From Macrostomum lignano (Eukaryota), in contig NIVC01001267.1 in NCBI GenBank assembly GCA_002269645.1, positions 124,001-188,000 on the forward strand: a DNA stretch of 64,000 nucleotides. The letters are read 5' to 3'. The notes under the pieces are model-generated. The model saw only the letters and a list, made by a program, of their open reading frames with translations. It made no database searches and was not told the DNA's origin. The position numbers were made by a program, and so were the translations under genes. Shown here in pieces: positions 3,179 through 58,975 of the stretch (positions are counted from its first letter, which is position 1; each line of letters starts with the position of its first letter).

Positions 3179-3530
<352 letters not shown>

Positions 3531-31777: not shown

Positions 31778-33089
31778 TTAGTCCTTGTTTACGAATGTGA
31801 TGGTAACCTTATTAGTGTCACCACAAGCCTCAATCCGCATTAGTTTGTGCGGTGTTCCTTGAACCACAGTAGTTTCACAGAAGTCCGTCCCGGTTGTAGC
31901 AGTACTGCCATCGGGTGTAGTCACAGTTGACATGGTCCTTGTACTGATCTCACGAGTTTGACTGTCGACTTGACCGCATAGAATTGCGCTTACGTTTTTC
32001 TGCTTCGTGATAGATGGCGAGATATAGCGCTCAAGGGCTTTAGAACTGGAATGGCCAGTAACTTTGGCGATGTCACTACGCTCAATTCCAGCCTCATGCA
32101 ACTCCGTGGCGCACATCTTTCGCAGACTTTGGTTGGTAAATCTAGAGCTCCCATTCGGACGAACCAGTGCTACAGCATCCTTCACCAGAGTAGAGAGTGT
32201 ATTCCTTCCAATCGGCGTGGACAGAAACCAAGATTTCCCAATATTTGATGTCCAGTGCTTGTTGGCAGCAAGCAACTTTGCAGTTTTCCGGGCGTAGAGA
32301 TGCATACTTCCGATAGATGCAAACAATACATTTGGTGCAATCCGCTGAATGGAACGCCCTCACCAGTTTTGGTTCCTTGTTCATACCTTTTAAGCCTCCT
32401 TGATTAGTCTTCGTTCTTCGGTTCTCCGCATAAACTAAACACTCATCTACTCCACGCCCTTCAATCCGAATTTCGCGTTCAAATTCCAGGTCCCTCAGTT
32501 CGGATCCACCTCGCAGTCCAAAATTCTTCCCAATCAGCCAGATAGTCGTGCGTACCAACTGCTCCGGAGACTCGACACCTAGAACGCCGTCTGACCACAG
32601 GTCCTCTTCAATGGTTGTCGACACGGGCTCTGCCTTCCTCAATCCAGCGCCCTTGCCCTCCGCAGTAGAAATCTTCATGGCCGCGTCCAAAGCCTTTCTG
32701 CTCTTTTCGAACTCGATGTCCGTCCAGATGCACCACTGACGGCGATACACATGGCGCATGTGGTACTGTATTGACGAAAAGAAATCCTTTAATGTCCCAG
32801 CGGAGTAGCGATCGTTCCTCTTTGTCCTGACCTCCAGAATGAAACTTATTAGAAAGTTCAAATCGGACTTCGAGAACTCATCTGCGTCTTTCAGTACCAT
32901 GAGCGCGGGTCCACCGTCGGAACACCAGAGTACTTTCTTCGCCGCATGCCACTCTTGGAAAGTAGCAAACATCCAGCGACATTTCTTTAGCGTGTTCGTT
33001 GGAACCTTTTCTTCGATTAGTGAACTGACTTCTTCGTCAGTCAGATTGACAAATCTTTCGGTAGCCATTTTAACTATACTGTCCGTCAA
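31778..33089 (-). pseudogene. Crypton (DUF3504-type) tyrosine recombinase, one frameshift near 32300
   Basis: N-terminus RFVNLTDEEV..KVPTNTLKK..W; catalytic box LIGKNFGLRGGSELRDL; TKTNQGGLK; W..STPIGRNTL; FTNQSLRKMCATEL..IAKVTGHSS..LERY. Confidence 0.92.
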
Positions 33090-33339
33090 AAGTTCCGGAA
33101 CCCTTGCTACGATGTCTTCTAGCGGACATAATTTCAGTCCGTTTCAATTGTAACTTGATTCAAATGAAAGCTGCGGATCTCAGCTCCATTATGTGGTCAA
33201 GAAAAAGTTTATTCGAAGGAGCGCGTGTGAACAGGCCAGTGTTATGTACATAAAGGTTAGAGAAAAAAAGTGAGGAAAAGACAAACAAGCAATTGTCTAT
33301 GGTTGCTGAGTCTATGGAGCAAACACACAGGGCTATTTA

Positions 33340-34432
33340 CACACTTGCTGCCGGCACACAAAAAAAGATGGCGTCCTGAATTTAAACGGAAGAGTAATTC
33401 TCAATAGCGAGTCGCGCCGCCCTGTGCACGAATTACAGCTTCGCAGCGACTGCGCATCGAGTGGATGATGCGGCGCACCAGGTCTTGAGGAATCGCAGCC
33501 CATTCTTCGGCAATCGCTGGGGCCAACGCTGCGATATTAGGAATATTTCGCCTGGCCAGTCGTCTGCCCAGCTCATCCCAGATATGTTCTATCGGGTTCA
33601 AATCCGGGCTGTTGGCCGGCCAGTTCATGTGCACATACTGCACATGTGTGTCATGAAACTGCTGCACAATAGCACATCTGTGTGGCGTCGCATTGTCGTC
33701 CTGCAGCAGGAACCCCTGACCAACGCTCGCCAGCCCAAAGGGAACCGCAACATCACGTAGAACTGCTACGTACCTTGCGCCCGTCATGGTGCCGTCAATC
33801 ACTTCGACGAAGGACAGGTGGTTCCATGATGCTGCAGCCCAGACCATCACCGACCCGCCACTGCCACCGCGCCTCGATACCCACTGCACTGCGTCCTGTT
33901 GCTCGTAGCAAGAGTTGCGCTGGCGCCACACGCGAATTCTCCCATCATTCTAATGCACACAGAATCTGCTCTCGTCGGTGAACACCACCAGCCGCCACTG
34001 CTGTTGAGCCGACCAAAAGCGATGCTCGTGACACCACTGCAGCCGTGCGGCTCTGTGAGCTGCTGACAGAGCAGGGAACTTTAAACTTCGATAGCTGTCG
34101 AGTCCTGCGGCTCGAAGTCGACGGGAGATGGTGGACTGCGACACCGTGACATGCAAACGGTCGCTCAAATTTCTCTGCAATGTCGGCAGGCTCACGAAAG
34201 GGTCATTCCTGGCAATGTTTGCAACGAAGTTATTGCTGGCTGCATCCATCACACGAGGCCGTCCTGATTTCGGCAAGTTGTCAACAAAGCCACTGGTCGC
34301 AAATTTGGACGCGTAACGCTGCACAGTCGTCAGTGGCACGTCAAGATGAGCAGCGATTCGTTTCAGCGACCATCCGGCATCCTGTCGTAACGTCACAATT
34401 CTCCACCGCGTCTCAGTGCTAACAACCGGCAT
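33340..34432 (-). mobile_element. Tc1-family transposon, transposase with a single in-frame TAG; D-35-E spacing
   Basis: ORF 33950-34432 (HTH, VVFTDESRF) is in frame with 33401-33931 (QDDNATPH..WPANSPDLNPIEHIW). A TA-flanked end is likely at 33340; no matching 5' TIR was found. Confidence 0.92.
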
Positions 34433-34800
34433 TTTGCTAAGCTGGCTTGTTGACGTAGACCCTGTTTTTTACTCTCCCATGAAAGCTGACTGCACAAGAA
34501 TCCATAAGAGCCTGTTGATCAGGCTCCCATAAGCGCCTCAGTGCAGCCTTGCCAAGTCTCCAAATTTCATCAGCACGTCGACCACATGTGTCTGCATCAG
34601 TTAATTGCAGACGCAGTGCTAATTGGCGCACAGGGGTGTACTGAATACACTAGCGCTTATGGAAAAAATCCGGACTTCTGGCAGAACCGTCGAATATCTC
34701 GACGGTCCGGAGGGCTGGCGACTTGATTCTTGTTTGAGAAGGTGCGCAACAAAAAGTTAGCCATATCATTTGGCTTTCACGGCGGTAAACAGGCCGGATA

Positions 34801-34950
34801 ACTGCGGCAAAGCGCTATACATTGGTAACATATGAGTGCGGCAAAGCGGAGATAGAAGTGCGCAGAACTGCGGCAAAGCGCTATACATTGGTAACATATG
34901 AGTGCGGCAAAGCGGAGATAGAAGTGCGCAGAACTGCGGCAAAGCGGATA
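34801..34950 (+). repeat. 66-bp tandem repeat (2.3 copies) carrying five GCGGCAAAGCG motifs
   Basis: Unit starts at 34801, 34867 and 34933. Confidence 0.92.
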
Positions 34951-35397
34951 AAAACGGCAACTATAGAAGGAATTGTAAATATATACGTGGCAGAAATTTG
35001 GCAGCTAGTAAGTTAGGTAGCACAATTCACTGTTGGTGCCTAGCACAATGTCTATAAAAGTAGATATATATAGCTATGGGGAAGTTTCATTTGTTGCTAT
35101 ATCTGGCTAGCCTGTGTAGTATACGAGACATGCCTATCGCCTAATTAATCTATCAAATTGTTGTTAAAATAAAGCGGAGAAAACGGAGAACAGAGCATGG
35201 GCATAATAAAAGTGGCACAATATATATATATTAGACAAGCATTACAGGATTCAGTTTTCAGTTTACATTATTGCATTAACTATAACAATTTGTAGCAATT
35301 TAGCTAATCCAGGTAGCGCGCTTGCAGCATCAACTATGGCTATATAGTTATATATAGGCGGCGGCAAAACAATTATTACGACAAAGGGTCGCGCAAG

Positions 35398-35434
35398 AAA
35401 TTGTGCTTGGCACCTCCGGTGCCAGGCACAATTT
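35398..35434. other. 17-bp-arm hairpin AAATTGTGCTTGGCACC-TCC-GGTGCCAGGCACAATTT
   Basis: One G-T mismatch; the stem extends with GCGC/GCGC. It shares its core with the 15-bp inverted pair at 35035-35049 and 42788-42802. Confidence 0.9.
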
Positions 35435-35557
35435 CAAGCGCGCCCTAGATATAAATAATTGACAACTGATTGATTGAAATTTTTCTACCTGTCGCATTTC
35501 GACACAGAGGTCTGTTGCTTCTGCTATTGCGCTGCTGCTATTGCGTCACTCTGTCAA

Positions 35558-38306
35558 TTAGCCCCCCCCCCGCTTACATCCGGTGCATCTGGCTGGGCCA
35601 GACGTCGCCGCACTCGACTTCTTTTTCTTCTTCTGCTGCTGCTCCTGCATCAACGATAGCCTGGCTTCGGCGGCCGCTTTGCGCTTTGATTTGCATCGCA
35701 TCAGCTGTACTTCACCGTGCGTTACGGGCTGCGAGAACGACGGCACGAAGCAGACTTCAGTCGGCGTAGTTGCTGTCCTGGCGGCTGGACCGGATGCGGC
35801 ATTGGTGACGGCGGTGCACCTGCGTGTAGCTTTGGCTGCTGGCACGACTGCTGCTGCTGCTGCTGCTGTTGTTTTGCTGGTGGAGGCGGAGGAGGCCTTG
35901 GCAGTCGTCGAGGAGGAGGCGGCTCGCCGCGCGACAAGCTGGTCGACTGTGGCCTGAACATTAGTCCTGGTAACCAGCATGGCATTCGTCGCGTAGTGCC
36001 TCATCATCATAGGCACGGAATTCTCGAAAAGCGCGGCCACCTGATCGGCCATCTCTGGTCGGCCAGCCGCCGCTATGTCCTGCTTTGAGCTGCGAAAGAT
36101 GGTCGGGCAGACTCCGGCTCGACCTAGCAGGTGCTGGGCGTAGGCTGCAACAGAGTGGCTAAACGTCGAGACGGACAGCTTCTCGCCTCGCAGAGTGCAC
36201 AGGACGAACGGCGAGCTAGACACTGCGGGCAAGTCGCCTGCGGCGATGCAACTGCTGCGCCAGGCTAGCAGCAGGTCGATGAACGACGTCGGCAGTGTGA
36301 GGACGCTGCAGCCGACCGAGGCGATCTTCTTGTGGCTCACCTCGCGACCGGGAAGCCGGATGGTCGAATAGCCATTTTCCGCGTTGTCTCGGCGACAGGC
36401 GCTACCCGGCCGGATGTGCGCTACGCGGAGACCGCGCCACGGCCGAACGCGCAGCGGATGCATCGCGGTCGCGTGAAGAGCGAAGCGGTTGCGCATCGCA
36501 GTGAAGCCGGCGGCGCAGCCACGTCCGGCGGGCACGTCGGGGCCGGCGGAGACCAGCTCGGAGTAGTCGTCGAGAATTTTGCGCCACTCAACGGGGGTCA
36601 GCAGTCTGCATTGCTTCTTGTCGTGGTGCAACGGAGCGTCCAGCCGGCGTTCAAAGTCGTGCCGCTGCCTGACTGTTTTCAACCGCTTCTGTAGCAGGTT
36701 GCAACGGCTGTCAAAGTCGGCGGCAATCTCGGGCGGCAGCGCGAGGCGTTCGATTAGCGACTGCAGATGTTGTCGGTCGTGCACGATGTATGCCAACATG
36801 TACTGGGTACACCGAATCAGGGCCTGTGCCCGATTTCTAACCGTGCCAGAACTCTTGCTGGTGGCGCGAATCTCTGCGACGGCTGCTGACGGGTCGGCCA
36901 GACAGAACACCAAGTCCCGCTCGTGGAGGCCAACACCAGCCACCTCTGCCATCTTTGAACAAACGGACAATACGAGTGACAAGGTGTCAATCAGCGCTTC
37001 AGTGTGGCCGTCGTACTCGGGATTGCGGACGCCAGTCGAGTCATCCCAATGGAGCTCTTGCAGAACCTTCAGCTGAGCCAGCAGCGGTGCGTCGATGGGA
37101 TACTGTCGCAAAAGTTCGGAATTGCTGCGCAACTTGATGACGGCCAGAGCATCCCCCGCCGCGATCGCTGCCTTCACGGCCGCCGAGTCGCGGCTGGCAT
37201 TCGCCGCCGAGGCCGCCGAGGCCGCCGAGTCGCAGCTGGCATTCGCCGCCGAGGCCGCCGAGTCGCAGCTGGCATTCGCCGCCGAGGCCGCCGAGTCGCA
37301 GCTGGCATTCGCCGCCGAGGCCGCCGAGTCGCAGCTGGCATTCGCCGCCGAGGCCGCCGAGTCGCAGCTGGCATTCGCCGCCGAGGCCGCCGAGTCGCAG
37401 CTGGCATTCGCCGCCGAGGCCGCCGAGTCGCAGCTGGCATTCGCCGCCGAGGCCGCCGAGTCGCAGCTGGCATTCGCCGCCGAGGCCGCCGAGTCGCAGC
37501 TGGCATTCGCCGCCGAGGCCGCCGAGTCGCAGCTGGCATTCGCCGCCGAGGCCGTCGAGTCGCAGCTGGCATTCGCCGCCGAGTCGCAGCTGGCATCCGC
37601 CGCCGAGTCGCAGCTGGCATCCGCCGCCAAGGCCGCCGAGTCGCGGCTGCTGCTGCTGCTGCCTTTGGCAAGAGGCGCCAAGGAATCGGCTGTATGCAGT
37701 TATGGATGGATGGTGTGCGAAAATGAAGTCACGGGTGAGCTTTTGAAAGCAATGTGCTCCAATTTTAGATTGACAGCGACTCATACCTGCTGGCTTTTTA
37801 GCGTGCTTTGCTGCGTGCTTTGTCGTATCTCTATAAAAGCACTTGCAGTCGGCGCAGTACTGTTCCCGTCGGCGAGCACGATTTGCTGCCTGTTGCTCAA
37901 CAGCCACAGAGTCTGCCGCAGGTCGCAGGGTGGAAAGTCGCCAAAGCCAGGACGTACGCCTTTCCAAAGACCAGCCGTCCTCGTTGGCACTGTCGATATG
38001 CTGTTGCTTGATCCAGTCTTTATGCCGCGCAGCAAAATGCCTCTTCAGCGTGTCTCCACGCATCTGGGCGGTGCAGCCCGGAACAGGGCACTGCTTGGCA
38101 TATTTTTTGTTGCGATCGGTTGCTGCGGCACTCGTGCCTCTGACTGTCGCTGAACCCGCCGCTGCCGCTTCCGCGCCTCTGGCCGACGCCGCCGAACTTG
38201 CCGCTGCCGCTGCCGGGCTGCTGTCCAGCAGGCAAGTCAAAGGGCCGTCGCCATCGCCGCTGCTGGCCAGCGCTGGACTGTCCGCGGCCGCTGCTACTGT
38301 GTACAA
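35558..38306 (-). CDS. C2H2 zinc finger - Ala/Ser repeat - tyrosine recombinase fusion, ~883 aa; exons 38306-37787 and 37689-35558
   Basis: Phase-1 intron G|GTATGA...ACTGCATACAG|CC joins the two ORFs in frame. ZnFs: CPVPGC..TLKRHFAARH and CADC..KHAAKH. YR-like order: RNRF..HPLRVR..GLRVAHI (R), SHKK (K), PTIFR (R), ALFENS, MRHY (Y). Confidence 0.75.
37190..37640 (-). repeat. 33-bp coding minisatellite (DSAASAANASC)n, ~10 copies
   Basis: Frame-preserving repeat inside the recombinase gene. Confidence 0.95.
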
Positions 38307-39847
38307 TGGGTGTTAGATGGCATGGCAACCCATCAATCAATCAATCAAACAATCAATCAATGTAGTGAATAGAGTCTTAAATATCGGATCGGATGACGCA
38401 GTTTCGCCTCACCTCCAATCGATGCTGAAATCATAAATTCGCTGCTACTTGAACTATCGTCTTGGGCCTCTTCCTCGTCGTAGCCGAACAAGAGCCGGAG
38501 GTACTTTCCGAAGGACATCATCAGGCGATGGAATAAATAAAGAAAACGGATTTTGGACCTGATCACTCTTTGCAATTGTTTACAGTGAAAAATGGAAGGG
38601 AAGAGCCATAGACTGTTGACTGACTTTATACAAAGAAGCGAAGAGTTAGCCATCCAAATCCCGGCTATCCCCCCTCCTCATAGACTAATCTCACCGGGCA
38701 TGTACTCTGCTGTTGTCTATGGATTTTTGTTGTCTATGGTTGTATATGTTGACTATCGATTTTTTTGACTGTGTTCCTTAACCCAGCCCCCACCCCCGCA
38801 TGCATCAGTGCCCCACACTCTCTTTCTCCCTCTATCCAAAAAGCAATTTTAGCCAGCCACCCCGATTTTCCTACCCCCGCCCTCTGTAAAGCCGAATGGT
38901 CATAGGGCACTGCATATTATGCAAGGCAAAAGAAAATAATACACGCAACTATTTCTGCTGTTCAATAAAAAGCACCAAAGCGATATAGACGTATTGATGA
39001 ATATATATATATCTACCCCCCCCCCCTAATATAGTAGACAGACATAATATTATAGAGTAAATATCAATGAGAGAATATTGTGGCCCAAATATGTTGCCAA
39101 AAAAGCGCATTTGCCCTGTAGATAGAAAATGTTTTCGACTAAAGATATATAAATTACGGATGCAGCACCATTACTAAGTTGCTCAATAGGAAGCAGCTGA
39201 TCGAGATGGAAAAAAAGCTGTTTGGTTTGGTTTGGTATACAATAGCGAAGAAGCGGCGAAATATTTAAATAACGGTTGCTTAGGCGGCCCCATCTGGCGC
39301 ACAGAAGCGACAAAAAATGCACATCGAACTCCTTAGAAACAAAACCAACACTGCAGTTGCATTCAGCCAGCCAGGCTGAGATCACGTCGATTTCCAAACG
39401 ACGACGAAACAAACTGAAAAACAAACACACACAAACACTGGAACACGAGAACAGGTGTACCTTTCTGCCTGCAGCACAACCTCGGTACCTGCATCGCATC
39501 GCCTCAACAAAGTAGGGGAAGTAAGGGCCAAAGAGAGAGGGAGAGAGAGAGAAGGGGAAAGAGGATAGAAGGGATAGAAGATAGAGAAGAAACAAAGGTA
39601 AGTGTGGGCAATGTGCATCTGACGTGCTGCAGCAGCTCACTAAATTGTTGCAGCAGTACTGCAGCCCCTAACGACTGGCCCACCTCCGCCGCCGGCACAA
39701 TAACGATAATGTCCTCCATCCATCCATCCATCCATCAATCAATCAATCAATCAGTGTTTCTATTCAACAATAGTAGGCTGCTTCGCGTTCTTCTTCTTCT
39801 TCTTCTTCGGCGACGGCGGCGGCATCGTCGGCAAACAGCCGCTCCTG

Positions 39848-42576
39848 CTACTGCGGCGGTGGCGGTGGCGGCGGCGGCATCTGCTGCTGCTGCTGCTGCT
39901 GCACATTTTTCTTCGCCGCCTGCGACGCCGCATCTTGGCGTCCTCTGCCGCTGCGACCTTGACTGGCGTCGCACCCGTCGCAGTCGAACAGATTATGCGG
40001 GATGTGCACGACTGCAGTCATCCTGCGCAAGAAGTCCCGACTGATCTGCCCTGGGGCCGCGTGGCCCGCCACAACAATGGCGTGTGGCCATGGCTCTTTT
40101 TTGTGGCTTTGATATTTCTCATTGATCGTGAACTTATCACGGTTGAACAGTAGCAGCAGTTGACCCGGAATTGGACGGCTGGCATCGAATTCATCGACAA
40201 AAATGCACTTATGCAAGTTAAAGCGCAGCCCGTCGAAAGGAAAACTTGTTGTCAAGTCCGGCACGAACACAGGCTCCCTGCCAAAGTGCAGGTGCACCAT
40301 GGCCGTCTTGCCAACTCCGGAAGGCCCCCACAAATATATTGTGGGCGGCGGCATCTCCCTCTGCATGGCGCGGCACACGGCTATCTGTACGTCGCACAGA
40401 CCGCTGCCCAGGTGCGTCACCACAAGTTCGTCTGGCAGCGGCGGTGGCGGCTGCGGCTGCTGCTGCGACACCCTCTGGCTGCCGCCGTTGCTGCGGCGGC
40501 GACACGCGTCCTCCGACGAAGAAGAAGGACCGGAACAGGCGGCGAAAGTGGCGGCGGCGGCGGCGGCGGCGCTACTACGGAACGACACTGGCGGCCGCTC
40601 GCAGACACCGCACAGTGCCTTCTGCTGCTGGCCGCCGAGCCTGACGAACCCCGAGAGCGCCTCTGCCCTCATCCGACGCAGAAGTTGAATGTTGTTGAAG
40701 TAGTCTAAAGACTGCTTTGTCAACATCGGATTGCCCGCGTTTAGCACGGGGTCGTCAAGATCCGGCTGCACCGCCTCGACCGGATACGACATCGCCCAAC
40801 GATAGAGTACGATGGTGCGCGACAAGCAGCTGTCATCGATATTAATTGTGCAGCATACCGGGTCAAGCGCAGTTATCCGGCGCAGCTCGGCTTCGACGCT
40901 GCGGACGCTCCTGATCTCGACTTGCGTCCAGCGGCGCACAGCAAAGGTGTCCGCGTCGCGGCCTGACGCGAAAATCGGACGCAGCTGCCCGACCAAGTCG
41001 CAATTAGTGTGGAGGACGGCGGTGCGGACAAATGCGTGAATGCTTGACGTCTCCCGACTAACATCGTCGGTCAGGGGCGCATATGGATCGACAATGTGCG
41101 TCTTGGATGGCTCGAACTCATTCTTAGTGACGCCTATTTTTTGACATTGTTTTTTGTGTGTTGATCGTCGAGTTGAGAAATTAGATGCAGAAGAAGAAGA
41201 CGGCGCAATATTATTCAGAAATGGGATGATGCAGAGAGAGAGAGAGGGGGCGGAGGCGCGCGACAGATGAGGATTGTGGGGGAAGAGGGATTATACGATT
41301 ATGGCAGTGTTGCAGTCGTGGCAATTCAATAAATGGCATTGATATATCATTAATTGTGATATTCATATAGTCTATGGCAATAGTTTGGCAAATCAGCGCT
41401 GTCGATCGCGCATAGGAGCTGCACAGAAATGATATAAAAAGAAAAGAACAGCAATGCTTAATAAAGTAAGTAGATAAATAGGAAAGGGCAACAACCCCAC
41501 GCTACTCACTGATGGCCAGTTGAGTCGCCCATTCACTCCAGGCTGACATTAACATCATCTTGAGCGCGCCAGGTTGCTTCACGTAGGCTATCCTGAGCAC
41601 AGACATGCCGCGGTAGGCCCGCCGATTCGCCAGCTGTCCATTGCTGCCTGCAACGGAGGCGTCTACGGCATCCTCGGGGTGCAGCAGAATGCGAGGCACG
41701 AGCAGCCTGGACGTGGTGTCCCGTGTCGGCTGCGGCTGCTGATGATGCTGGTGAGCAGCAGCCGTCTCGTAGGAGGCGGCCGCGGCGCTCCATTCGTCGG
41801 TATATCCGCCGCAGTAATAAGGTGGCGGCGGAGGCGGCGGCGGCGGCGGCGGCGGCGGCGGCTGCGAAGACCGAGTGTCCGACGGGATAGAACAGCCTGT
41901 CGTCAAAGTGGACGATTGGTGGTGGTTGTTGTGAACAATGACAAATAATTTCACAATATGGGTAATGAGCTATGAACTAAAAGTGTAAGGATCGATGGTC
42001 AACAACGAATGCTCAGCAACTGAGCAGCAGCATTCAACGACTCCTACCTGGCGATAGGATCGAACTGCTGCGACTGCAGGGCGACGATGGCAGCGCGTTC
42101 GCCGCCGTTATCGGGCGTTGACAATGGCGCTTTGGCGGTGTCGGCCCTTGTTGCTGCTTAGCGGCGCTTAGCGACGCGGCCGTGCCACTTCGGGATACGA
42201 AGCAGCGACTCGTTATCGCCGGCTTGATGCCAGCTGACCCGATTCTCGGCTGTCGTTTTAGTTCCGGCTTTGCAGCGACTGCAGCCGCTGTCTCCTGATG
42301 ATGCTGCTGCTGACTCTGCTGTTCAGTCTTGAATAATGGCAGGCGACCACTTGCCTCGTCGTCTTCGTCGCTGTCTGGTACGAAGACCCCAGTGATGACG
42401 CAATCAGCCTGCTCATCCGCCGCCTCCAGCGTGAAGAGGTCGGCCTCTAGTGCAGCCCGCTCCGCGTCTTCTTGCCGCTTTGGAACAGTCGATGGGGCCG
42501 CGGCCGCGGCGGCGGCGGCGGCCGCGGCTTCAGCAGCGTCAACCTGCTCGCAGGCTTCCAGGAGGACGGCCGCCAT
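39848..42576 (-). CDS. Rep-like protein with SF3 helicase, ~733 aa; exons 42576-42048, 41896-41510, 41133-39848
   Basis: Two phase-1 introns (G|GTAGGA..GACGACAG|GC and A|GTGAGT..AAAATAG|GC) join the frames without stops. Walker A WGPSGVGKT, Walker B IFVDEF, B' LLLLFNRDKFTINEKY, motif C IVVAGH, Arg finger FLRRM. The true start may lie further upstream. Confidence 0.8.
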
Positions 42577-42779
42577 CTCGTCCGCGGTTGCGTATTGGCT
42601 ATCGCCGGGCCATGGAGGACTTGCATCTTTTATATTTTATTATCGTAATCAGCTGCTCGCTGGCTGCTGGATGCTCGCTGCAGCTAACAACGGTCGGACG
42701 CGCGCGTGGGCAATAATGCAGAAAAAATGAATGAGCAGCCCAGCCGTATACTATAGCTACCGGGTTAATATATATATCT

Positions 42780-42975
42780 CTAGTAAGATTGTGCTAGGCA
42801 CCGCCGCCTCTGCCGCCGCTTTGAGCTTTTTGTCTATGGTCCATCCGCAGCATATATATATCTTTAAAAGAATTGTGCTAGGCACAATCCGCTTTGCCAC
42901 AGTGCGCACTGCATCCGCTTTACCGCATCCGCTTTACCGCATCCGCTGTACCGCAATTGCTAATTGCTTTACCGT
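42780..42975. other. Right-end motif array of the Rep-YR element
   Basis: ATTGTGCTAGGCAC occurs twice (42788, 42872), each preceded by a TATATATATCT box, followed by CCGCTTT(G/A)CC repeats, which are the reverse complement of the left-end motif. Confidence 0.8.
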
Positions 42976-44677
42976 AGCGCAAGATAGCCCGTGTTCTTGA
43001 ATCTCGTGTGCCTGCGTTGCTCCGTTCCGGCGCAGCAAAAAAATTTGGGAAATTCCCCCCCTCTTGGTAGTTCTACTGTTAAGAACTTAGGGGGGGGCTA
43101 TTATTAAATTCAAGCAGCCAATGAAATTCATGGGGGAATATCCCAATTTTTAGGAAGCCTTGGCCATAGACTCGCTTTCAGATGAGCGATCATTTCTATT
43201 CCTCCATCCATGATGCAGTCCCCATTTTAATTATATTGGCTGGGTGAGTCTATAAATATTTACCCCGATTCAACTTTATTGGTTTTCGCTTGAACGCGAG
43301 GGAAGTCTAAATCAGTTCCTTTTAAGTTTTTTTTTCGTGGGAAAGACTAGGAATTTACGACGTATTTATAGTCCCACTAACCCTACAGCCTAAACAGATG
43401 ACTTGCCCATCTAAAAGAATATAAGATCTATGGTTGATTGACACAAGTAGTGTTTTTAAAATCGGTGATACAACCTTTATTGAAGTTTATTTTTTAGATT
43501 TAACTTAAGCTAAACTTAAACAAACAACGAAAAAGAAAAAGTTATTTTCTTATTTTTAAAGATAATTGGGGAACACGCAATGGAAAGTTTTTGATAGGAA
43601 CCAGAATGGGGGTTGTAGCAACTCCATAGTCGACAGCTGTACTCATAAAACGACCATTAAGCAACCACATAGAAAGAGAGGAGCGCAACTTCATTCCGAA
43701 AAACATCTCTGCATCTCTGCTGTGAATGCCAGCGTTGTGAACATGTAAAATGGTACAATTCTGGGGCTGCCAAAAACCGGCTGCAGAATAGACGGTTCGA
43801 TGAGCCCTAGCAGATCTGTAGCCCTGCCGGTGCTACGGTTTAGAATCTTCGGGGCTCCGGCCAGTTTTGTATCGCTGACTCGCCGATCTGGAGACTGCAA
43901 ACGGGCTACGATCGCCGACCGGAGATCTTAAAGGGTGTAAGATCTCCTTTGGAGACTACAAACGGTTATGGGTCCGTTTTGGGATCTCCGGGGCATGATT
44001 GGGTCTCATCTGGAGATCCTAGATTCTGTTGTACCTTCGGAGATTCTGCACCGTTTCCCGATCTCCTTCACGAGTGCAAAAACTAATGTTTGATTTAGAA
44101 TTTCCGGCTACCGATTTACCCAATTTTTAAAGAAATTATAATCTTTCTATTTTGTATAGTATTGTGTATGCGCTTCTCGCTTGGGGTTGTCTTAAGGCGG
44201 CCTGGCAGGTCTTTAAATCTCATGGCTGGCACCTATGTTGTATCTGTGGTTGAGGTTGTGCTAGCACAGGGCTCTTAGGTTGTCTCAGGCTCTCTCTTGC
44301 CAGAAGCCTACTTATCAGTAGCGTTGGTAGTTGCTGTCACCAGTCCCTTCGGATCTCAGCCTTCGGTGAGGTGAAGATCCCGTCGGAACGAAATAACAAA
44401 GACAAGCGAACACAGCACTTCAGGCAGATTAGCGATTTCAGACTAATAGTCAGCAGATCCTGTCGGGCTCAGTGGGTCGGCTGGGAGGACGGTGTTAGCC
44501 TCAGAGCAGAATCAGAGGTCTTAGTTTAGGATGAGAACTGAGTCAGGACAATGGGAGAAATAGGGCAATTGCAGAACTGCGTTTACTGAGAGAGAACAGA
44601 GCTAAAGAAATGACCGAAATGGCCGACCGAACAATTGCGCTGCGGTCAGGCCCGCACTGCCACTCTAACGGACTGCC

Positions 44678-45301
44678 TCATCGCAGGCGCTTGACCTGAC
44701 CCCTCAGACTGCTGCTGCCTGCCCCTCCCGCCTGTTCTGCGAGCGCATGCGCGAAAGGGGCCTCCCTTCTGCGTCTTAATATAAAGAAATGAAGCGAACT
44801 GAACTGAGCTGATCTGAACCAAGGCATGAGGGGGGCTCGCATATATAGAGAGGAAATATTGCACCATCGAAAACAAGACCCCCGCTGCGGGTCATTGATG
44901 GCTCTGTTGCTATTTTTAGCAACTGGCGCACGGGTTTTGTCCAGAGGAGGAAGGGGTCTGGTCTGGGTGCACGTGATTTCCCCCACAAACACGGGCCTAA
45001 CGCACAATGATGAAATGACAGCTGCGCGTCGCCCCGGGTCGTTGTCTATATAATCGAAGATATATTTGACGCACTCGACGATTGCGTCAGCTCGGTTGCG
45101 TGCCGTTCCTAGCTCTCTGACGAGGACCGGACCTCTAGCAGCCTGCCTGGGATCCGTCAACCAGAATGAGTCATCGCGAAAGCCGGCGCTTGGGTTCATT
45201 CTGGCGAACGCCGTCATCTCCAAATTGTACGTCAACTGCCATTCCTTTCGGAAATCAGCGTCCTGCCGGCCGCGAATACCGGTCTCCTCGTCGAAGAACA
45301 T
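44678..45301 (-). CDS. Orphan ORF of unknown function downstream of the second Rep-like copy
   Basis: 207 aa; the first ~110 aa have globular-looking composition; no family recognised. Confidence 0.35.
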   Translation of the reverse strand: MFFDEETGIRGRQDADFRKEWQLTYNLEMTAFARMNPSAGFRDDSFWLTDPRQAARGPVLVRELGTARNRADAIVECVKYIFDYIDNDPGRRAAVISSLCVRPVFVGEITCTQTRPLPPLDKTRAPVAKNSNRAINDPQRGSCFRWCNISSLYMRAPLMPWFRSAQFSSLHFFILRRRREAPFAHALAEQAGGAGSSSLRGQVKRLR

Positions 45302-45717
45302 ATCTTCAATATGGCTAGCTGTTTGGCCACCGCCTTGCCGTAAACCGCGGCGTCCAGTTTGTCTACTGCAGCATTTTGCTGATGCTGCTTAGGCTGACTA
45401 AATGCTGCCGCTTCGAACTCAGTCGCCTCTGCCACCGCCACCGCTTCGACCGTAGCCGCCGCAACCACTGCAGACGCTGCCAAAGATGACGACTTTCGCT
45501 GCTGCTGATGCTGCCGACGCCGTTTGGTTCGGGCGACACTTTCACCGTTGCCGTCGTCAGCAGCAGCTTCGGCCGCATGCAGCTTGCTGTGATAGTCGAC
45601 ATACTATGATAGTCTGCGCAGATGAGGTCAAAACGGGGATGCGCTTGCTCGCGGACAGGCTCAGCAAGACTGTAGCGCCTCGACCACCACTCGGTTCCAC
45701 CCTCCAGTTTCGACTAA

Positions 45718-47323
45718 TCAATCGATGCGTACAGACTGTCTGCCGCTGCGGGTTCTTTTGCAGCGCCCCCTCGACGCGTGTACTTGCTGCAACTCATCGA
45801 AGAATAGACAGCAATGGATACCGAGCTTCAGTCCGTCGAATGGGAAAGTCTCCGATAAGTCGGGAGTGTACACTGTCTCGCGGCCGAAGTGTATTGCGAC
45901 CATAGCGGACTTCCCAACGCCGCTTGGTCCCCAGAGATACAATATAGCCGGAGCTACACGTGCCTGCCGCATTGAGGCGCAAAGCTCGCGCTGGACTGCC
46001 CTGCCGCCACCCAGCACTACGCGGTTCGCGCTAATGTTGCTGCGCGAGGTATCTGCTGCGGCAGCAGCCGCGGTCGATGCCACTACCGGAGGCAGCTTGC
46101 AAACACCGCACAAACTCGGTCGAACCAGGGTGGACGGCAGTGGGCTAATGCCCAACTCCTCGGCCGGTATCTGGTGCATCATCTGCACTGAGGAAAAATA
46201 CTCAAGTCTGTCGCATCAGCAGCGGGTTGCCCACAGACCAACTGTGGATCGTCTGGCCGAGGGGTCACAATGCCCAACGGGAGGACATGGCCCATCTGTA
46301 GAGCACGACGTTGCGAGACAGGCAGCTATCATCGATGTCCATCGTTGCAGCTGCGGGATCGCTCATAGTGACGCGCCTGATCTCAGCCTGGCCGGATCGC
46401 ACACTGCGAATTTCGGCGCGCGTCCAGCCCATCACGGCGAAGGTGTGCTCGCTGGAGCCGGAGCCAAACAGTGCGCTCAGCCGACCGATCAGGTCAAGGG
46501 TGTTGTGCAGCGCGTTGGTGAGAATGAACACCAACAAGGATCTGGTGCCTTTAATTAGGCAAGAAGCAGTCGGGGCGTAAAGATCCATCATAAGCGTGTG
46601 ACGCGACAAAATCATTGTCTGCCAAGCCTATGCATTATTAGATTTACATAAAGAAGCGGCAAAGCGAGTTTTTACTTACCAATCGCAAACTGAGTAGCGT
46701 ATCTCCTTCTCAATGCGCTATCCAGCATCATCTTCATCTGCGAAGCGTTTCGCACATATGCCATCTGGACTATGGACATTGCACGGAAGGCTCGGCGACT
46801 CGCGTCAGCAGTAGCGGTGACACCGGCGGACAGGGGCTCTGCTGGGTGCAGCGGTACGCCCGGTGTCAGGAGCCGCGATGTCGTGCACTTCGGTTGCTAC
46901 GAAACCGGAATAGTCGCCTCGTAGGCAGCCGCAGCCATTGAATAGTCTGCCGGCTTAGCCTTGTCTGTGTTTGGTAATAGTAATTTATACTTTGACAAGT
47001 TGCCATACAGATGTAGCCCATATTTCGCAATACTTAAAGCTATATCACATTCACAAAACAATAGTTCAAAGTCGATTTTGTATTTTATGCATGCATGTAG
47101 ACCTACCGGCGATGGTGGCGGCGGTGGAAGACGATGTTCTCGCTGCTGCTGGCTAACGCCACCTCGGTGAAGAGATGCTTGACGTCGATGGGGATGCCAT
47201 CAGAGGTGATAGTTTAAACGGCAGCGGCCGCTGCGAAGCGATTGGGTGTAACAGTCTTGGCTGCAGCGGCATCCCCGCCTTCTTTATGGTGCTTTGGCCA
47301 ACAACGTCAGTCATTTTTTCCAT
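45718..47323 (-). pseudogene. Divergent paralog of the Rep-like SF3 gene; exons 47323-47107, 46964-46680, 46627-~45718
   Basis: TTSRLL.P..LHP; SRRAFRAMSIVQMAYVR..MKMML..ATQFAI; EIRSVRS..EIRRVT..DP; DIDDSCLSR.VVLYRWAMS; LCGVC..PPV; LYLWGPSGVGKSAMV.IHFGRE..PDL..FPFDGL..FFDEL. Premature stops and frameshifts; homology is lost after Walker B. Confidence 0.88.
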
Positions 47324-48278
47324 TTCAAGACATTTTCCACATAGGAAAGTAGTCTTCGCATAGTAGCTCGCATATTTCGCAGCCGTCGTGCACCATATCA
47401 GGGAAGAAATAGCAAGCGTTGGAAAACACGTGTAAATGTGTTGTCAGTTCATGATTCCGCATTACAATTCTAATAGAGAACTTTTTCTTGCACTTCTTGC
47501 TCAGTAAACAGCACCTTGCTTCTTGCGCTTACTGCCATCCTTTTTTCTCACTATGTAATACAATGCTCCATCGTGGATACTAAAATGTTTGCTCTTACCC
47601 TGATGCGCCTCTTTAAATTGCTTTTCTCTCTAACGTTCAAGAAGACAGGGATTTGTGCGTAGTCATTGCCCAAAATTTTAGTTTCATGCAGTAACCTCCA
47701 TGCAATTGGTGGCCATTCTTTTGAATCAGAATTTATTACACATGTGACGAAGTTGTAGACCTACTTTTCTTTTGCTAATGTTGATGAGTTTGTGTAGCGG
47801 TCTATCAGGATTTACACGTAGTGAAGAAGTAACTGGGCGAATTACAGGGAGCTGTCGAAAATACTGTCGAAAATCTGCGAACCAAATTTAAAACGTTTTA
47901 GTAGTAATTTGAAGTTGTAGTAAAAGATCTTAAAGATTCAAAGAACTTAATCTACTTAACGTGTCAAACAATACGTGCAGATGTACAATTAAATAGAATA
48001 CTTAAATACCAATAATGACATGTACTTTGTAAAGGCTTCACAACGACGGCTCACAAAACGATCTACAAAAGCTCACACCGTCACACACAGATGGCTTCTC
48101 TTTATAACTACAAAACGGATAAAACCATAAATTTTAATAAAAGGACCAATAAAACGGATGAAAACGAGAAAGCTTGATTCATTTTGCAGTAGCCACGACT
48201 CGTATCAGTGGAGTGAGTCAGTGATAAGTTCTGTCAGAATAAATAAATTATCTAATTGAATGTGCAACCATGCAAAGT

Positions 48279-50037
48279 TCAGTTTTGAAAGACAAGCTTG
48301 GGTCCTGCCCCGACGTTGATCTCCCTCGCCACTTCCGACTCGTCAATAACCGTTCGCTGGGCGGCACCAGGCTGCAAAGCAACTACACCGTCATCTTCAA
48401 CTGATAGCTGAAGCACTGACGCCACGGCTGCACTGGATTGTTGGAATGATCGATCCCGTCTCTTGGCCAGGTACCGGCGTGTTGTTCTCTCAGATAGTTG
48501 TCCAGTGATGGACATGATGTCGGACATGCTGTGCCCGGCAGCCTCAAGGTCGCAGATTCTTGTAAGTAAGAAAGTTGTCCTTCGCGTCCCTTCAACTTGG
48601 CCTTAGACATAAAAAAACGGCAGCGGTCATTGATTAAAATGTCACTTCGTGGTAATGACCTCTGATTAAAGGCCGGTCATCAATTTTAAGTCAAACCAGC
48701 AATTTCGATTTATGAGAACGGCAAACGAGACAAAAGTTTATTTAAAACTATTTACCATTTTGTTTAAAACCAATAACAAAAATGGTCAAATCCTATTAAG
48801 CTTTAATGTTAATTGAATTTGCAATCAGAGAAGGTGCAGTTATGAAACAGAACTTGTTCGCCAGATTTGCTTGATTGATGCCGGTTATTTGCATGTTTGA
48901 CGTCACGCTAGTGGATGGTCCAACAGGCAGATCCAGCTCACTGGCCCCAGAATCACTTGATCTTCCGTAGCCGACCTAGTCGTCTTTATCTTCTTTTTCT
49001 TTAGTTTGCAGTGTCAATGCTGACGTCACAGCGGAGCTGCTCGCTTGCAGAGCGCGGTCCCGACGTTTTTCAAGGTACCGGCGTGCCGTTCGTTTAGAGT
49101 TTTGGCCGGTGACAGAAATGATGTCCGTCCGCCATGCTATGTCCTGCGACCTCCAGATTGCAGATCCTGGTGACCCTAATAGAAGATTATGGCAGGCCAG
49201 AGCGTGTCGAAATGAGGGTAAAACCAGCGATCTTTGCCTGCAGCCGATGTCTATGGCCAAACCAAATGGCATATAATCTTTATATTTATTCCCCTCTTTA
49301 AAAACAAGAAGCGAGTAAACAAGCAGAATCAATTTCCAGAATAACAGATTAAAACGGAATGTGAGCTAATAAATATAGCTCTTATTTACATGTACAGTGA
49401 ACTAGGTAACGCATTATTGTCTCAAACATGCTAAAAGTTCAGTCTGCTCGATCAAACACTCACTTGTTGGGGGTGAAGTTAAGGTACAGTTTTCGAACTT
49501 GCAGTTCCCAAACGAATTGGGTGCTTTGCCAACTGGATTGCTAAAGGCTATATCATGCAGTTCGAAAGAGAATTTGAACCAACATCAGATGCTCTCAATG
49601 TCGGTTGGCATTGCATCTTCAATCAGAAACTTTTTAAACCTTTGAATATGATGTTCCGTCTGCTTTGCGGTAGACTTTCGCTTGCTATCCTCTTCTACCT
49701 GTCGCAGAAGATATTGTTCTTCAGAGGTCAACTCACGCAACAGAGTAATGTCAGCGTTGGTTGGATCACGGAGTTCCTCGTCGTAGAGGCGTTCATGGTT
49801 CTCAGTAAGGCCTGTCCATTGGTCGATTGGGACGGTATCCTCGCTGTTTACAAAACGAACGACAAAATCCAACTCATCGCCAGTCAAACCGCCTATTTCG
49901 TTTTTGCGTAATTCTGTCGTAGCGCAACATGATGCAAAAACGAAAAAAAAAATACTGTAGAGAAAATCGAGAAATAATCGAGAAAAACAGACTACTATAT
50001 ACAAATAGTAGGGGTCCTTCGTAGAAATTTTTACCAT
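48279..50037 (-). pseudogene. Fragments of a second Crypton-type tyrosine recombinase
   Basis: N-terminus RFVN..EEDSKRKSTAKQTEHHIQRFKKFL (49585-50037); two C-terminal pieces DI(M/I)S(I/V)TGQ.S.RT.RRYL (48279-48527, 48976-49150). Confidence 0.7.
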
Positions 50038-57937: not shown

Positions 57938-58369
57938 TCGCTCAATACACTGGAGCAGCTGCTGTCAGTAATGGGAGCCATTTTAATAACGACAGAATGC
58001 TCAAAGACATAGGGGGCGCACAGACAGGGAGGATGGCTTGAGATTTGGCTTCTGTGCTTCTTCATCAGTTTCTTCTCCTTCGCTTTCGCGGAAATGCTTC
58101 AGCTGACAGGCTTAGCAGTGATTTCTGATTGAAATTTGAGTCTGGTAATTGGACAGATTATATCACTATTTAATAACAAGTTGCTTGTCCTCAAGGGAAT
58201 AATTATTCAATCTTTTATTTTGCTGTAGTAAAAATATTTTTTAGGCATTAACAACTTTTGAAACCATGGTTTTTTGAAAGATGATTATAATTTTTTTAAT
58301 TGACTGATTAAGCATTTAGTTTGCCTTTATTTATGTCGCAATGCAGTCTCAGTACTCGTGCGAATTGTG

Positions 58370-58975
58370 CATGTAGTCTTTGTGCACCATTGTGGTCTTT
58401 GTACACCATGGTTGGTCTTTGTGCACCATGGTGGTCTTTGTGCACCATTGTGGTTTTTGTACACCATGGTGGTCTTTGTGCACCATTGTGGTTTTTGTAC
58501 ACCATGGTGGTCTTTGTGCACCATTGCGGTCTTTGTGCACCATGGTCTTTGTGCACCATGGTTGGTCTTTGTGCACCATGGTGGTCTTTGTGCACCATGG
58601 TCTTTGTGCACCATGGTCTTTGTGCACCATGGTTGGTCTTTGTGCACCATGGTGGTCTTTGTGCACCATGGTCTTTGTGCACCATGGTTGGTCTTTGTAC
58701 ACCATGATTGGTCTTTGTGCACCATGATTGGTCTTTGTGCACCATGGTGGTCTTTGTGCACCATGGTCTTTGTGCACCATGGTTGGTCTTTGTACACCAT
58801 GGTTGGTCTTTGTGCACCATGGTTGGTCTTTGTGCACCATGGTGGTCTTTGTGCACCATGGTCTTTGTGCACCATGGTTGGTCTTTGTGCACCATGGTGG
58901 TCTTTGTGCACCATGGTGGTCTGTGCACCATTGTGGTCTTTGAGCACCATTGTGGTCTTTGTGCACCATGGTGGT
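58370..58975 (+). repeat. 15-20-bp minisatellite (GGTCTTTGTGCACCAT(GGT))
   Basis: About 33 copies; it produces the spurious HKD/CTK ORFs. Confidence 0.97.

Follow-up and report, generated by a model that had tools for sequence, protein, structure and literature searches.

A stretch of 64,000 nt of a Macrostomum lignano contig, referred to below as the window, was analyzed. It contained two genes of the same orientation, enclosed by two arrays of short repeats that face each other (Table 1). The enclosed DNA had a GC content of 0.554, compared with 0.42-0.46 in the background, and distinct GC-rich coding sequence was present in both lineages. No recognizable ORF was found in the spacer between the two genes, and Rfam detected no RNA family in 33000-48000.

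Table 1. Positions in the window of the element, its parts, its target and a neighboring second copy
Feature	Positions	Strand	Description	Basis
Target, left half	34533-34762		Short interspersed repeat, also in M. lignano; adjoins Tc1/mariner copy	
TAGCC, left flank	34758-34762		Candidate crossover core or 5-bp target duplication	Read directly
Whole element, copy 1	34763-42988	Both genes on -	8,226 bp	Flanks contiguous in L002 repeat copy
Left subterminal inverted-repeat region	34782-35072	+	Six iterons, then GTGCCTAGCACAAT (35036-35049) and TATATA tract	
Internal palindrome	35385-35450		Two inverted GTGCCWGGCACAAT copies with short spacer, between recombinase stop codon and left iterons	
Zinc-finger/probable recombinase gene	35558-38296	-	Exon 2, 35558-37689; intron, 37690-37786; exon 1 from 37787	
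Probable tyrosine-recombinase catalytic domain	35924-36604 (approximate)	-		hhalign profile comparison
33-nt tandem repeat	37113-37682	-	In-frame, 11-aa unit, in recombinase exon 2; ~11 copies, 99% identical	
Two zinc-finger-like motifs	37803-38090 (approximate)	-	C-x4-C-x11-H-x4-H; C-x2-C-x9-H...	Read from translations
Spacer between two genes	38297-39847		1.5 kb, AT-richer, GC 0.447	ORF scan
Helicase gene	39848-42576	-	733 aa; exons 42576-42048, 41896-41510, 41133-39848	
SF3 helicase domain	39946-40435 (approximate)	-		Sequence matches, Foldseek, model
Helicase N-terminal region	40650-41700	-	Family-specific; includes intron 41134-41509	Alignments A1, A6
Right subterminal inverted-repeat region	42768-42974	-	TATATA tract, two GTGCCTAGCACAAT, three to five iterons	
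TAGCC, element right end	42984-42988			Read directly
Target, right half	42989-43060		Same short interspersed repeat as left half	
Copy 2, recombinase-gene remnant	44980-45301	-	~110 aa of N-terminal helical domain, 28% identity	BLASTP, E 1e-11
Copy 2, helicase-gene remnant	45787-46884	-	~50% aa identity to copy 1	tblastn, tblastx, three-frame reading

The two flanks of the element adjoin each other in a paralogous copy of the target repeat at L002, a locus in M. lignano. Window positions 34609-34762 matched L002 19750-19903 at 90%, and 42981-43047 matched L002 19895-19956 at 82%. This set the exact ends of the element at 34763 and 42988, and the DNA between them is a single inserted unit. The first-pass annotation of this DNA had recognized a discrete mobile insertion, as this empty site confirmed, but its limits of 34780-43000 had to be replaced by these ends.

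The same annotation had reported no visible target site duplication. On the contrary, TAGCC was present at both junctions and only once in the paralogous empty site (..AAAGTTAGCC/CGTG..). The last 10 nt of the element, AAGATAGCC, ending at 42988, were equal to the corresponding empty site, AAGTTAGCC, at nine of ten positions. The 5-bp direct repeat could be the crossover core of a recombinase, and it fits a target duplication left by cut-and-paste transposition equally well. The target repeat was also considered as the end of the neighboring Tc1/mariner element. This was rejected; the L002 copy has no adjoining transposase.

Six iterons of the form GCGGYAAAS were found at the left end (34782-34946), with a 66-bp duplication, and three to five were found on the opposite strand at the right end (42890-42974). 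The motif GCGGCAAAGCG occurred five times on the + strand at 34804-34946 and three times (1 mismatch) on the - strand at 42890-42940, a count in the end arrays that was reached by none of 100 shuffles. When the pattern was loosened to GCGGYAMAS, 9 of the 11 matches in the window fell inside the two end zones. GTGCCTAGCACAAT was located at 35036 on the + strand and at 42788 and 42872 on the - strand. The left segment 34865-35072 aligned collinearly with the reverse complement of 42768-42958. The element ends in long inverted repeats, imperfect and composed of iterons in opposite orientation, with arrays of about 200-300 bp each, in agreement with the earlier description of reverse-complementary motif arrays.

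Hairpin ends, which had also been described, were rejected. The terminal 150-nt segments folded no better than shuffled sequences (z -0.35 to +1.1). The sole strong hairpin of the element was the internal palindrome (-30.3 kcal/mol as a DNA fold, z -9.5; none of 200 shuffles was as stable). Its loop is 3-5 nt long, and its arms consist of the element's own repeat motif.

Both introns of the helicase gene are of the GT-AG type and in phase 1, and the frame was kept open by one acceptor only. The joining of exons B and C was supported by a homologous ORF in L006 that has no intron and aligned in one collinear HSP (E 7e-14). In the other gene, a GT-AG intron of 97 nt (37786-37690) separates the zinc-finger exon from the large one. 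The earlier reading of two co-oriented genes with frames open after canonical splicing was thus upheld.

The C-terminal part of the helicase protein contains Walker A (GPSGVGKT), Walker B (IFVDEFD), motif C (VVAGH) and an RR finger, followed by a conserved H-x5-C-x2-C tail. The domain was modeled with a pLDDT of ~90. The top Foldseek matches in the PDB were papillomavirus E1, AAV2 Rep40/68 and the PCV2 Rep ATPase, and those in BFVD were CRESS Rep and parvovirus NS1, with bidnavirus NS also matched. By phmmer, classical Reps were matched at E 1e-4 to 7e-4. The matches to classical CRESS Reps and the Foldseek matches identify this ATPase as an SF3 helicase of the Rep/NS1/E1 type. In Pfam, PHROGs and NCBIfam, it was matched at the P-loop level only, and the Pfam RNA_helicase match was sub-threshold (E 0.046).

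In the N-terminal region of this protein, an SVRS and a W-x-(M/L)-S-Y motif are conserved, and a C-x2-C lies ahead of the helicase domain. Most of the region was modeled with a pLDDT below 50, and it may contain a cryptic fold. No HUH or YxxK motif was conserved in an alignment of seven homologous N-terminal regions, and no Rep, nuclease or other Pfam family was matched at E<=10. Pfam, PHROGs and NCBIfam detected no primase family in the helicase protein, of which the N-terminal region was modeled at low confidence. The label CRESS-Rep-like, given in the first-pass annotation, therefore applies to the helicase domain but not to the N-terminal region.

A search of 1.84 billion (1.84e9) representative proteins gave 17 matches, with about 13 relatives. 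The matches outside the family were classical Reps with visible HUH and YxxK only (P0012, P0014-P0016). The relatives recovered were on eukaryote-like contigs, some with introns, and the contigs of the other family members, 0.9-3.4 kb in length, have no room for a second gene. No relatives were found in IMG/VR, GenBank phages or JGI metagenomes, and a PDB sequence search with the helicase protein was empty. The word-indexed homology search gave no match with the helicase ORF and, among the matches listed, only P0005 with the family alignment A1. Pfam has no model for this family.

The first exon of the second gene reaches an acceptor at about 38272-38296. Frame tests found no in-frame ATG upstream of the zinc finger in this exon. 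A candidate start spliced from helicase exon A or A+B was frame-compatible, but 69 other ATG..GT combinations exist. The two zinc-finger-like motifs received no Pfam call. The M. lignano homologue has the two motifs as well, and the region matched the L002 ORF by BLASTP at E 1e-3.

Tyrosine recombinases share the catalytic set R-(K)-H-R-(H/W)-Y. Candidates for these residues in the C-terminal domain were the Arg in HPLRV, the Lys in EVSHKK, the Arg in TIFR and the Tyr in RHY, and both canonical His positions were substituted. The domain was compared by hhalign with a profile of six members (XerD, XerC, lambda Int, Cre, FimB and FimE). The score was 29.9 (E 1.2e-3; probability 8-19%), and the alignment placed two Arg residues on R148 and R247 of XerD. 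Among the controls, 200 column shuffles reached at most 21.4 and 12 unrelated real proteins gave 9.7-18.7, while a DUF3504 positive control certified by Pfam gave 30.4. The M. lignano homologue alone scored 14.5, which is no signal, and its first Arg was absent from the alignment.

No homologue of the recombinase protein was found by the word-indexed search or by Pfam at E<=10, including Phage_integrase and DUF3504. PHROGs and NCBIfam gave nothing, and PDB sequences gave no match to the protein or to a two-sequence recombinase profile. From the weak profile-profile match, which lay above all the negative controls, we interpreted the C-terminal domain of the zinc-finger protein as probably a tyrosine recombinase. 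The first-pass annotation had called it one. The domain behaved accordingly in the profile comparison, but not in the Pfam and PDB searches. Structure prediction, proposed there for both proteins, likewise gave the SF3 fold for the helicase but only a pLDDT of 37 for the single-sequence AlphaFold model of the recombinase.

Domain searches of all ORFs of the element detected no RT, RNase H, DDE transposase, capsid or other domain. No packaging ATPase, protease or primase domain was found within the element, which has two genes only. The suggestion that it might be a virus was not sustained, in view of the lack of a capsid and of any other recognizable gene.

A second, decayed copy adjoins the first and has the same gene order. 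Its helicase remnant contains at least two frameshifts and has lost the end of the helicase domain by a 3' truncation. In its recombinase remnant the catalytic half is gone in one large loss, and at least one frame change lies upstream. At L002, both genes lie within 7 kb and are convergent, with ~4.2 kb between the stop codons. The helicase there has 39.5% identity, and the zinc-finger recombinase has 25% (E 3e-6).

Two further, divergent loci contain the pair of genes as well. Co-occurrence, named in the first-pass annotation as a check, was thus observed in copy 2 and at L002, but with the different orientation at the latter. A MITE and a satellite lie between the convergent genes, so the two-gene unit is not established as a fixed arrangement outside the window. 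The empty site at L002 set the termini in the window. No inverted arrays were found between the outer regions of L002. One intact copy was seen.

We interpreted the unit as a Crypton-like DNA mobile element that uses a tyrosine recombinase for its movement and has, in addition, a gene for a replication-type helicase. We estimate the probability of this interpretation at roughly 60%. Cryptons are tyrosine-recombinase elements of fungi, stramenopiles and animals. Like them, the unit is a DNA element without RT or LTRs that was apparently moved by a tyrosine recombinase, its probable recombinase is fused to a DNA-binding module, and the short direct repeat at its boundaries may be a crossover core instead of a target duplication. 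Cryptons reportedly encode the recombinase only and lack long terminal inverted repeats. The unit, on the other hand, adds the SF3-helicase gene and the inverted iteron arrays, and its recombinase matches neither Phage_integrase nor DUF3504 of Pfam. DIRS and Ngaro elements encode RT and RNase H alongside a tyrosine recombinase, and differ from the unit in this respect.

Beyond insertion as a unit and the identity of the helicase, we infer the steps of the scheme that follows. The recombinase would excise the element as a circle, and would integrate the circle by reciprocal exchange within the TAGCC core common to element and target. Exchange within a shared core would explain why the similarity between the right end and the empty site extends beyond 5 bp. 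The iterons would face each other ~20 nt on either side of the joined core. They are putative binding sites for the zinc fingers, the N-terminal domain of the helicase, or both.

The free circular form may also replicate. A hexameric helicase would unwind the iteron region, and host polymerases would copy the extrachromosomal form. Such an action would resemble those of E1, large T antigen and Rep/NS1, and that of the replicative-integrative 'end module' proposed for polinton-like viruses. As the searches detected no nuclease domain, replication, if any, would follow a theta-like and not a rolling-circle mode.

A further and more tentative interpretation is that the unit is an animal 'integrative episome', the first member of a new eukaryotic group of mobile elements, and alternates between a chromosomal copy and a self-replicated circle. 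Conceivably, a nuclease-less SF3 helicase of the Rep/NS1 type replicates it and a very divergent tyrosine recombinase integrates it at a short core. One set of inverted iterons might, with similar reservation, be both attachment site and origin.

Prokaryotic integrative plasmids and small integrative elements encode a tyrosine integrase with a replication initiator or helicase, and pass between integrated and circular states. The combination of integrase and Rep/helicase in a small unit is the same, as a functional analogy. The unit differs in its eukaryotic host, its spliceosomal introns, the lack of sequence relatives in phage and viral collections, and NCBIfam matches at the P-loop level only.

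Among the alternatives, the best surviving one, which we consider unlikely, is that the unit derives from an integrating small DNA virus (polinton-like, virophage-like or other episomal), as its 'end module' or as a remnant without a capsid. The recombinase, the SF3 helicase and the inverted repeats would then have been left from, or captured from, a larger viral genome. Polinton-like viruses and virophages encode major and minor capsid proteins, a packaging ATPase and an AEP/D5-type primase fused to S3H. In some of them the tyrosine recombinase and S3H adjoin inverted repeats, and a mobile replicative-integrative 'end module' has been proposed, consisting of an inverted repeat, a primase-helicase and a tyrosine recombinase (PMC11296320). 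Its inverted repeats are proposed to be the attachment site and the origin (PMC11296320).

The unit resembles this module in the recombinase and S3H helicase encoded beside inverted repeats. All the nearest named relatives of the helicase, by structure and by sequence, are viral, and the GC composition is foreign to the host background. Against a viral remnant, the insertion has its own inverted ends, is complete between them and stands alone at 8.2 kb, with two genes, in an animal nucleus. The virion module (capsids, packaging ATPase), the protease and the primase domain were not detected, and neither IMG/VR nor GenBank phages contained a relative. Both genes carry spliceosomal introns, which suggested long residence in, and adaptation to, the animal nucleus. 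Other members of the helicase family are also on eukaryote-like contigs, some with introns.

Somewhat less probable still is that the helicase protein is itself the mobilizing enzyme. Its N-terminal domain would be a very divergent nicking nuclease acting by a Helitron- or Replitron-like, Rep-driven route, and the zinc-finger protein would be an accessory DNA-binding factor and no recombinase. The weakness of the recombinase assignment is consistent with this. So are the better conservation of the helicase gene between copies (~50% vs 28%) and the Rep proteins as nearest named sequence relatives of the helicase domain.

CRESS Reps have an N-terminal HUH endonuclease (motifs I-III, catalytic Tyr), and the viruses have a capsid gene and a nonanucleotide stem-loop origin. 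The unit shares with CRESS Rep and parvovirus NS1 the compact SF3 ATPase with Walker A, Walker B, motif C and Arg finger, and the short iterated repeats near the gene, as at Rep-dependent origins. It differs in lacking the HUH domain, the nonanucleotide stem-loop and the capsid gene, in its introns, and in its family-specific N-terminal domain.

In Helitrons, RepHel combines a two-Tyr HUH nuclease with a Pif1-type SF1 helicase, and the ends are asymmetric without inverted repeats. The helicase of the unit is SF3 and not SF1, without an HUH motif, and its ends are inverted repeats. A nicking route thus meets with HUH/YxxK conserved in none of the seven N-terminal regions, no Rep or nuclease family by Pfam, and symmetric inverted arrays in place of the asymmetric, TIR-less ends of rolling-circle elements. 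Moreover, the C-terminal domain of the zinc-finger protein matched the recombinase profile as well as the bona fide control did.

It is very improbable that the unit is non-autonomous, with two host or domesticated genes brought together by chance in a segmental insertion or an assembly artifact and with ordinary satellite as end motifs: a single copy was seen intact, the genes are arranged differently at L002, and repeats make up ~75% of the M. lignano genome, which is difficult to assemble (PMC10733133), but the junctions are precise against the paralogous empty site and share a 5-bp core, each end is a collinear inverted copy of the other, the decayed second copy keeps the gene order as in dying transposon copies, and the family is patchy and extremely rare in databases, unlike conserved host genes.

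The Crypton-like interpretation with an added helicase gene would widen the known combinations. The classes of eukaryotic DNA transposons are defined by their mobilizing enzymes: DDE transposase, tyrosine recombinase, HUH nuclease, and protein-primed polymerase plus integrase. No named family was suggested by Pfam, PHROGs, NCBIfam, PDB sequences or the literature, and the first-pass annotation had placed the unit in none. In the literature we found no description of a transposon with a recombinase and an SF3 helicase, and the pairing of a tyrosine recombinase with a virus-type helicase has not been described for animal transposons.

If the interpretation is true, a compact animal element has a gene combination previously described from polinton-like viruses, virophages and prokaryotic integrative elements alone. 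This bears on the exchange of replication and integration modules between small DNA viruses and transposons, and on whether Crypton-like circles amplify and do not merely move. The more tentative 'integrative episome', if true, would give animals an equivalent of prokaryotic integrative plasmids and might connect Cryptons with small DNA viruses in evolution. The helicase family is nearly invisible in current databases, and its definition lets annotators recognize such elements.

As a separate observation, Crypton-type (DUF3504) sequences were present in the same 64-kb window.

The boundaries of the element were fixed by a paralogous empty site in L002, an M. lignano locus. Window positions 34609-34762 matched L002 19750-19903, positions 42981-43047 matched L002 19895-19956, and the two L002 stretches are adjacent. 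Base by base, the uninterrupted paralogue reads AAAGTTAGCC followed directly by CGTGTT. At the left junction in the window AAAGTTAGCC is followed by the element, whose other terminus, CAAGATAGCC, is followed by CGTGTTC. The element was thus inserted as a single unit of 8,226 bp at a TAGCC site. Both junctions carry TAGCC, against a single occurrence in the empty site, which corrects the first-pass statement that no target-site duplication was visible.

Two readings of the TAGCC repeat are possible: a 5-bp target duplication, or a crossover core used in site-specific exchange. We favour the core, on mild evidence, because the unit has no DDE transposase (nor was any reverse transcriptase, capsid, primase or packaging gene found in it) and because the right end of the element and the empty site agree at 9 of the 10 positions that end with the core. 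Such agreement would not be predicted by a duplication.

The ends carry symmetric, inverted arrays of the iteron GCGGCAAAGCG, with the outermost copies about 20 nt inside each end. The number of copies at the ends was reached by 0 of 100 shuffles. A looser pattern had 11 matches across the 64-kb window, of which 9 lay inside the two end zones, in opposite orientation without exception. A second motif, GTGCCTAGCACAAT, was found once at the left end and twice, inverted, at the right end, and 42768-42958, once reverse-complemented, gave a collinear alignment with positions 34865-35072. The reverse-complementary arrays of the first-pass annotation were therefore borne out. Its hairpin ends were not, since the termini folded no more stably than shuffled sequence. 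The near-perfect palindrome listed in the table is internal to the element and consists of two inverted copies of the GTGCCTAGCACAAT motif, which is found in both subterminal regions. In layout it is comparable to an origin dyad or to the core site of a recombinase, yet it is set back from the left end by about 620 bp and does not lie at the junction.

Features of the element, its homologues and its surroundings (window coordinates unless a contig is named)
Feature	Position	Strand	Remarks
Element (copy 1)	34763-42988		8,226 bp
Iterons, left end	34804-34946	+	n = 5
Iterons, right end	42890-42940	-	n = 3, with one mismatch
Palindrome	35385-35450		-30.3 kcal/mol, z -9.5
33-nt tandem repeat, recombinase gene	37113-37682		~11 copies, 99% identity
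Recombinase gene	35558-38296	-	zinc-finger and probable tyrosine-recombinase gene
Helicase gene	exons 42576-42048, 41896-41510, 41133-39848	-	open across three exons, 733 aa
Helicase remnant, copy 2	45787-46884	-	~50% aa identity
Recombinase N-terminal remnant, copy 2	44980-45301	-	28% identity, E 1e-11
Iteron, copy 2	46656-46666		exact, single
Helicase homologue, L002	8454-10759	+	39.5% identity
Zinc-finger recombinase homologue, L002	17651-14941	-	25% identity over 205 aa, E 3e-6; zinc finger E 1e-3
MITE, L002	11201-11922		perfect 48-bp terminal inverted repeats
AG-rich satellite, L002	12888-14431		downstream of MITE
(D/N)SDGTI ORF, L001	1090-1293		overlaps helicase gene end
(D/N)SDGTI ORF, L008	2709-2930		after helicase gene end
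Crypton-type DUF3504/QRICH1 ORF pair	31778-33089	-	DUF3504 E 2e-15
Second ORF set	48279-50037	-	Crypton/DUF3504-like by eye
Tc1/mariner transposase	33401-34432	-	two ORFs
Mariner-like transposase ORFs	5406-7035		by eye
Gypsy-like pol/integrase ORFs	7655-9977		by eye
THAP-domain ORF	24409-25631		by eye
Long tandem repeats	3084-3579, 53436-54110, 58308-59018, 60703-62868		open in several frames

The two genes are intact and spliced. The helicase introns have the donors GTAGGA and GTGAGT, and for the first intron a single acceptor leaves the frame open. The second join had two independent lines of support. In copy 2, the degraded copy to the right of the element, the homologous codon carries a GTAAGT donor, and an intron-less homologous ORF in the metagenome contig L006 aligned through the junction as a single HSP (E 7e-14). 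The recombinase intron is 97 nt long and of the GT-AG type (donor GTATGAGT at 37786, acceptor before 37689), and its removal brings the zinc-finger exon in frame with the 2.1-kb exon. All three mapped introns are in phase 1. The splice models, the copy-2 donor and the L006 HSP bear out the earlier view of two genes that are open after canonical splicing.

No in-frame ATG was found upstream of the zinc finger in recombinase exon 1, and an additional 5' exon is therefore required. Helicase exons A and B have donors that agree in frame with recombinase-exon acceptors at 38272-38296, so that a splice from A or A+B to the recombinase would keep the frame, as would numerous other pairs of ATG and GT within the spacer. 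It is possible that both proteins come from one alternatively spliced primary transcript.

A word-indexed homology search with the helicase gave no match. An exhaustive search of 1.84 billion representative proteins gave 17 (best E 4e-26), all within the C-terminal 170 residues. Thirteen form a small family with Walker A, FxFDGL, Walker B, LLxLLDR..F..N.K.Q, motif C, an RR finger and an H-x5-C-x2-C tail. The other four (proteins P0012 and P0014-P0016) are Reps of the classical type, in which HUH and YxxK motifs can be seen. An AlphaFold model from 20 sequences reached a pLDDT of about 90 for the helicase domain. In Foldseek against the PDB, this domain ranked papillomavirus E1, AAV2 Rep40/68 and the PCV2 Rep ATPase at the top (TM 0.61 on target for the last), with RuvB-type AAA+ proteins interleaved; against BFVD the top matches were CRESS Rep, parvovirus NS1 and bidnavirus NS. 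The Rep sequence matches and the Foldseek rankings therefore support the earlier assignment as a Rep-like SF3 helicase.

The roughly 300 residues upstream contain family-conserved SVRS, W-x-(M/L)-S-Y and C-x2-C motifs, had no Pfam match and no conserved HUH or YxxK, and were modelled at low confidence. No evidence of a nuclease was found by Pfam, motif inspection or this model. In L001 and L008, contigs of the same ENA sample with helicase homologues, an ORF ends with a common (D/N)SDGTI motif that is missing from the window element. It may represent an additional exon or gene confined to that lineage.

Sequence searches with the recombinase (word-indexed, PDB sequences, Pfam at E<=10, PHROGs and NCBIfam) gave no match. 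The protein was compared by hhalign with a profile of XerD, XerC, lambda Int, Cre, FimB and FimE built from annotated records. The window catalytic region alone scored 29.9 (E 1.2e-3, 140 aligned columns), and a two-sequence profile of the window and L002 proteins 26.9. The maximum of 200 column shuffles was 21.4, and 12 unrelated real proteins of the window gave 9.7-18.7. The positive control, the Pfam-certified DUF3504 ORF (C-terminal in the Crypton-type pair of the window), scored 30.4. The M. lignano homologue alone scored 14.5, and its first Arg is missing in the alignment. The alignment was collinear and placed the HPLRV Arg on XerD R148 and the TIFR Arg on R247, with a conserved EV-x-HK at the expected site of the beta-hairpin Lys and RHY near the catalytic Tyr. 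Both canonical His positions are substituted. We interpreted the C-terminal domain as probably of the tyrosine-recombinase fold.

Two zinc-finger-like motifs precede the recombinase core, in the M. lignano protein also. Between them and the core lies the in-frame 33-nt tandem repeat, which is open in three minus-strand frames and one plus-strand frame and encodes an 11-aa Ser/Ala-rich repeat. The near-identity of its copies suggests a very recent expansion.

Linkage of the two genes was compared among copy 1, copy 2 and L002, as the remaining family members lie on contigs of 0.9-3.4 kb, too short for linkage. Copy 2 is 1.7 kb to the right of copy 1, with equal strand and gene order. Its helicase gene is interrupted by two or more frameshifts and truncated at the 3' end; in its recombinase gene the frame changes at least once, and the entire catalytic half is gone. 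The copies of both genes in L002 indicated that the pair recurs across lineages of roughly 40% identity. The co-occurrence sought by the first-pass annotation was thus found twice more, with the reservation that the L002 genes are convergent. A Tc1-like MITE, with a Tc1-like HTH ORF fragment inside, and a separate AG-rich satellite lie between them. Comparison of the outer regions of this locus gave no inverted arrays.

We file the unit as a DNA element mobilised by a recombinase, to which a helicase of the replication type has been added. That it is a self-replicating integrative episome, the founder of a new group, is a bolder reading and rather unlikely (roughly three chances in ten). It could instead be the remains of an integrating virus without its capsid, an element driven by Rep in which the zinc-finger protein is a mere accessory, or a gene pair that does not move; together, these readings have against them the absence of HUH motifs, the introns, the empty site and the symmetry of the ends. 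The first-pass observation was largely confirmed, with boundaries now exact, and its interpretation was supported in part.

The element works most like a Crypton, from which it differs in encoding more than a recombinase and in its long inverted ends. Its helicase resembles Rep/NS1 of CRESS replicons, whereas their HUH, capsid and origin are lacking. Every structural gene of polinton-like viruses is missing. Helitron and DIRS identities were rejected. Literature searches, with Repbase and Dfam outside the comparison, gave no account of a eukaryotic transposon that pairs such a recombinase with such a helicase. No recognisable domain was seen in the 1.5-kb spacer or in the other ORFs, and an Rfam search gave no RNA family.

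By analogy with the proposal for Cryptons, the recombinase would carry out strand exchange between the target and a circular form, inside the short core. The iterons may bind the zinc fingers, the helicase N-terminal domain or both, and the helicase would melt the iteron region for host enzymes to copy the free form. For the end module of polinton-like viruses (inverted repeat, primase-helicase and recombinase), an attachment site doubling as origin has been proposed (PMC11296320), the same logic as we propose for the iteron ends.

The window resembles a transposon-rich animal genome, with Tc1/mariner, mariner, Gypsy-like and THAP-like ORFs seen by eye elsewhere. GC is 0.55-0.63 in the element region versus 0.42-0.46 in the background. 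The Pfam-supported Crypton-type pair, in two overlapping reading frames, is separated from the left side of the element by about 1.7 kb containing a Tc1/mariner copy, which borders the left side of the repeat that received the element. This repeat is probably a separate short element, because its paralogue in L002 has no adjacent transposase. A short repeat flanking the element is 90-95% identical to a stretch of M. lignano contig NIVC01001938.1 (GCA_002269645.1, assembly Mlig_3_7; PMC10733133), which makes M. lignano or a near relative of it the probable host. The second Crypton-like ORF set has the tail ...TGQ.S.RT.RRYL..RRD... and a SAM-like N-terminal region. Long tandem repeats produce large spurious ORFs. 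The exact copy of GCGGCAAAGCG in copy 2 lies within an intron of the helicase remnant and may be due to chance, with about 1.3 matches expected per window at up to one mismatch.
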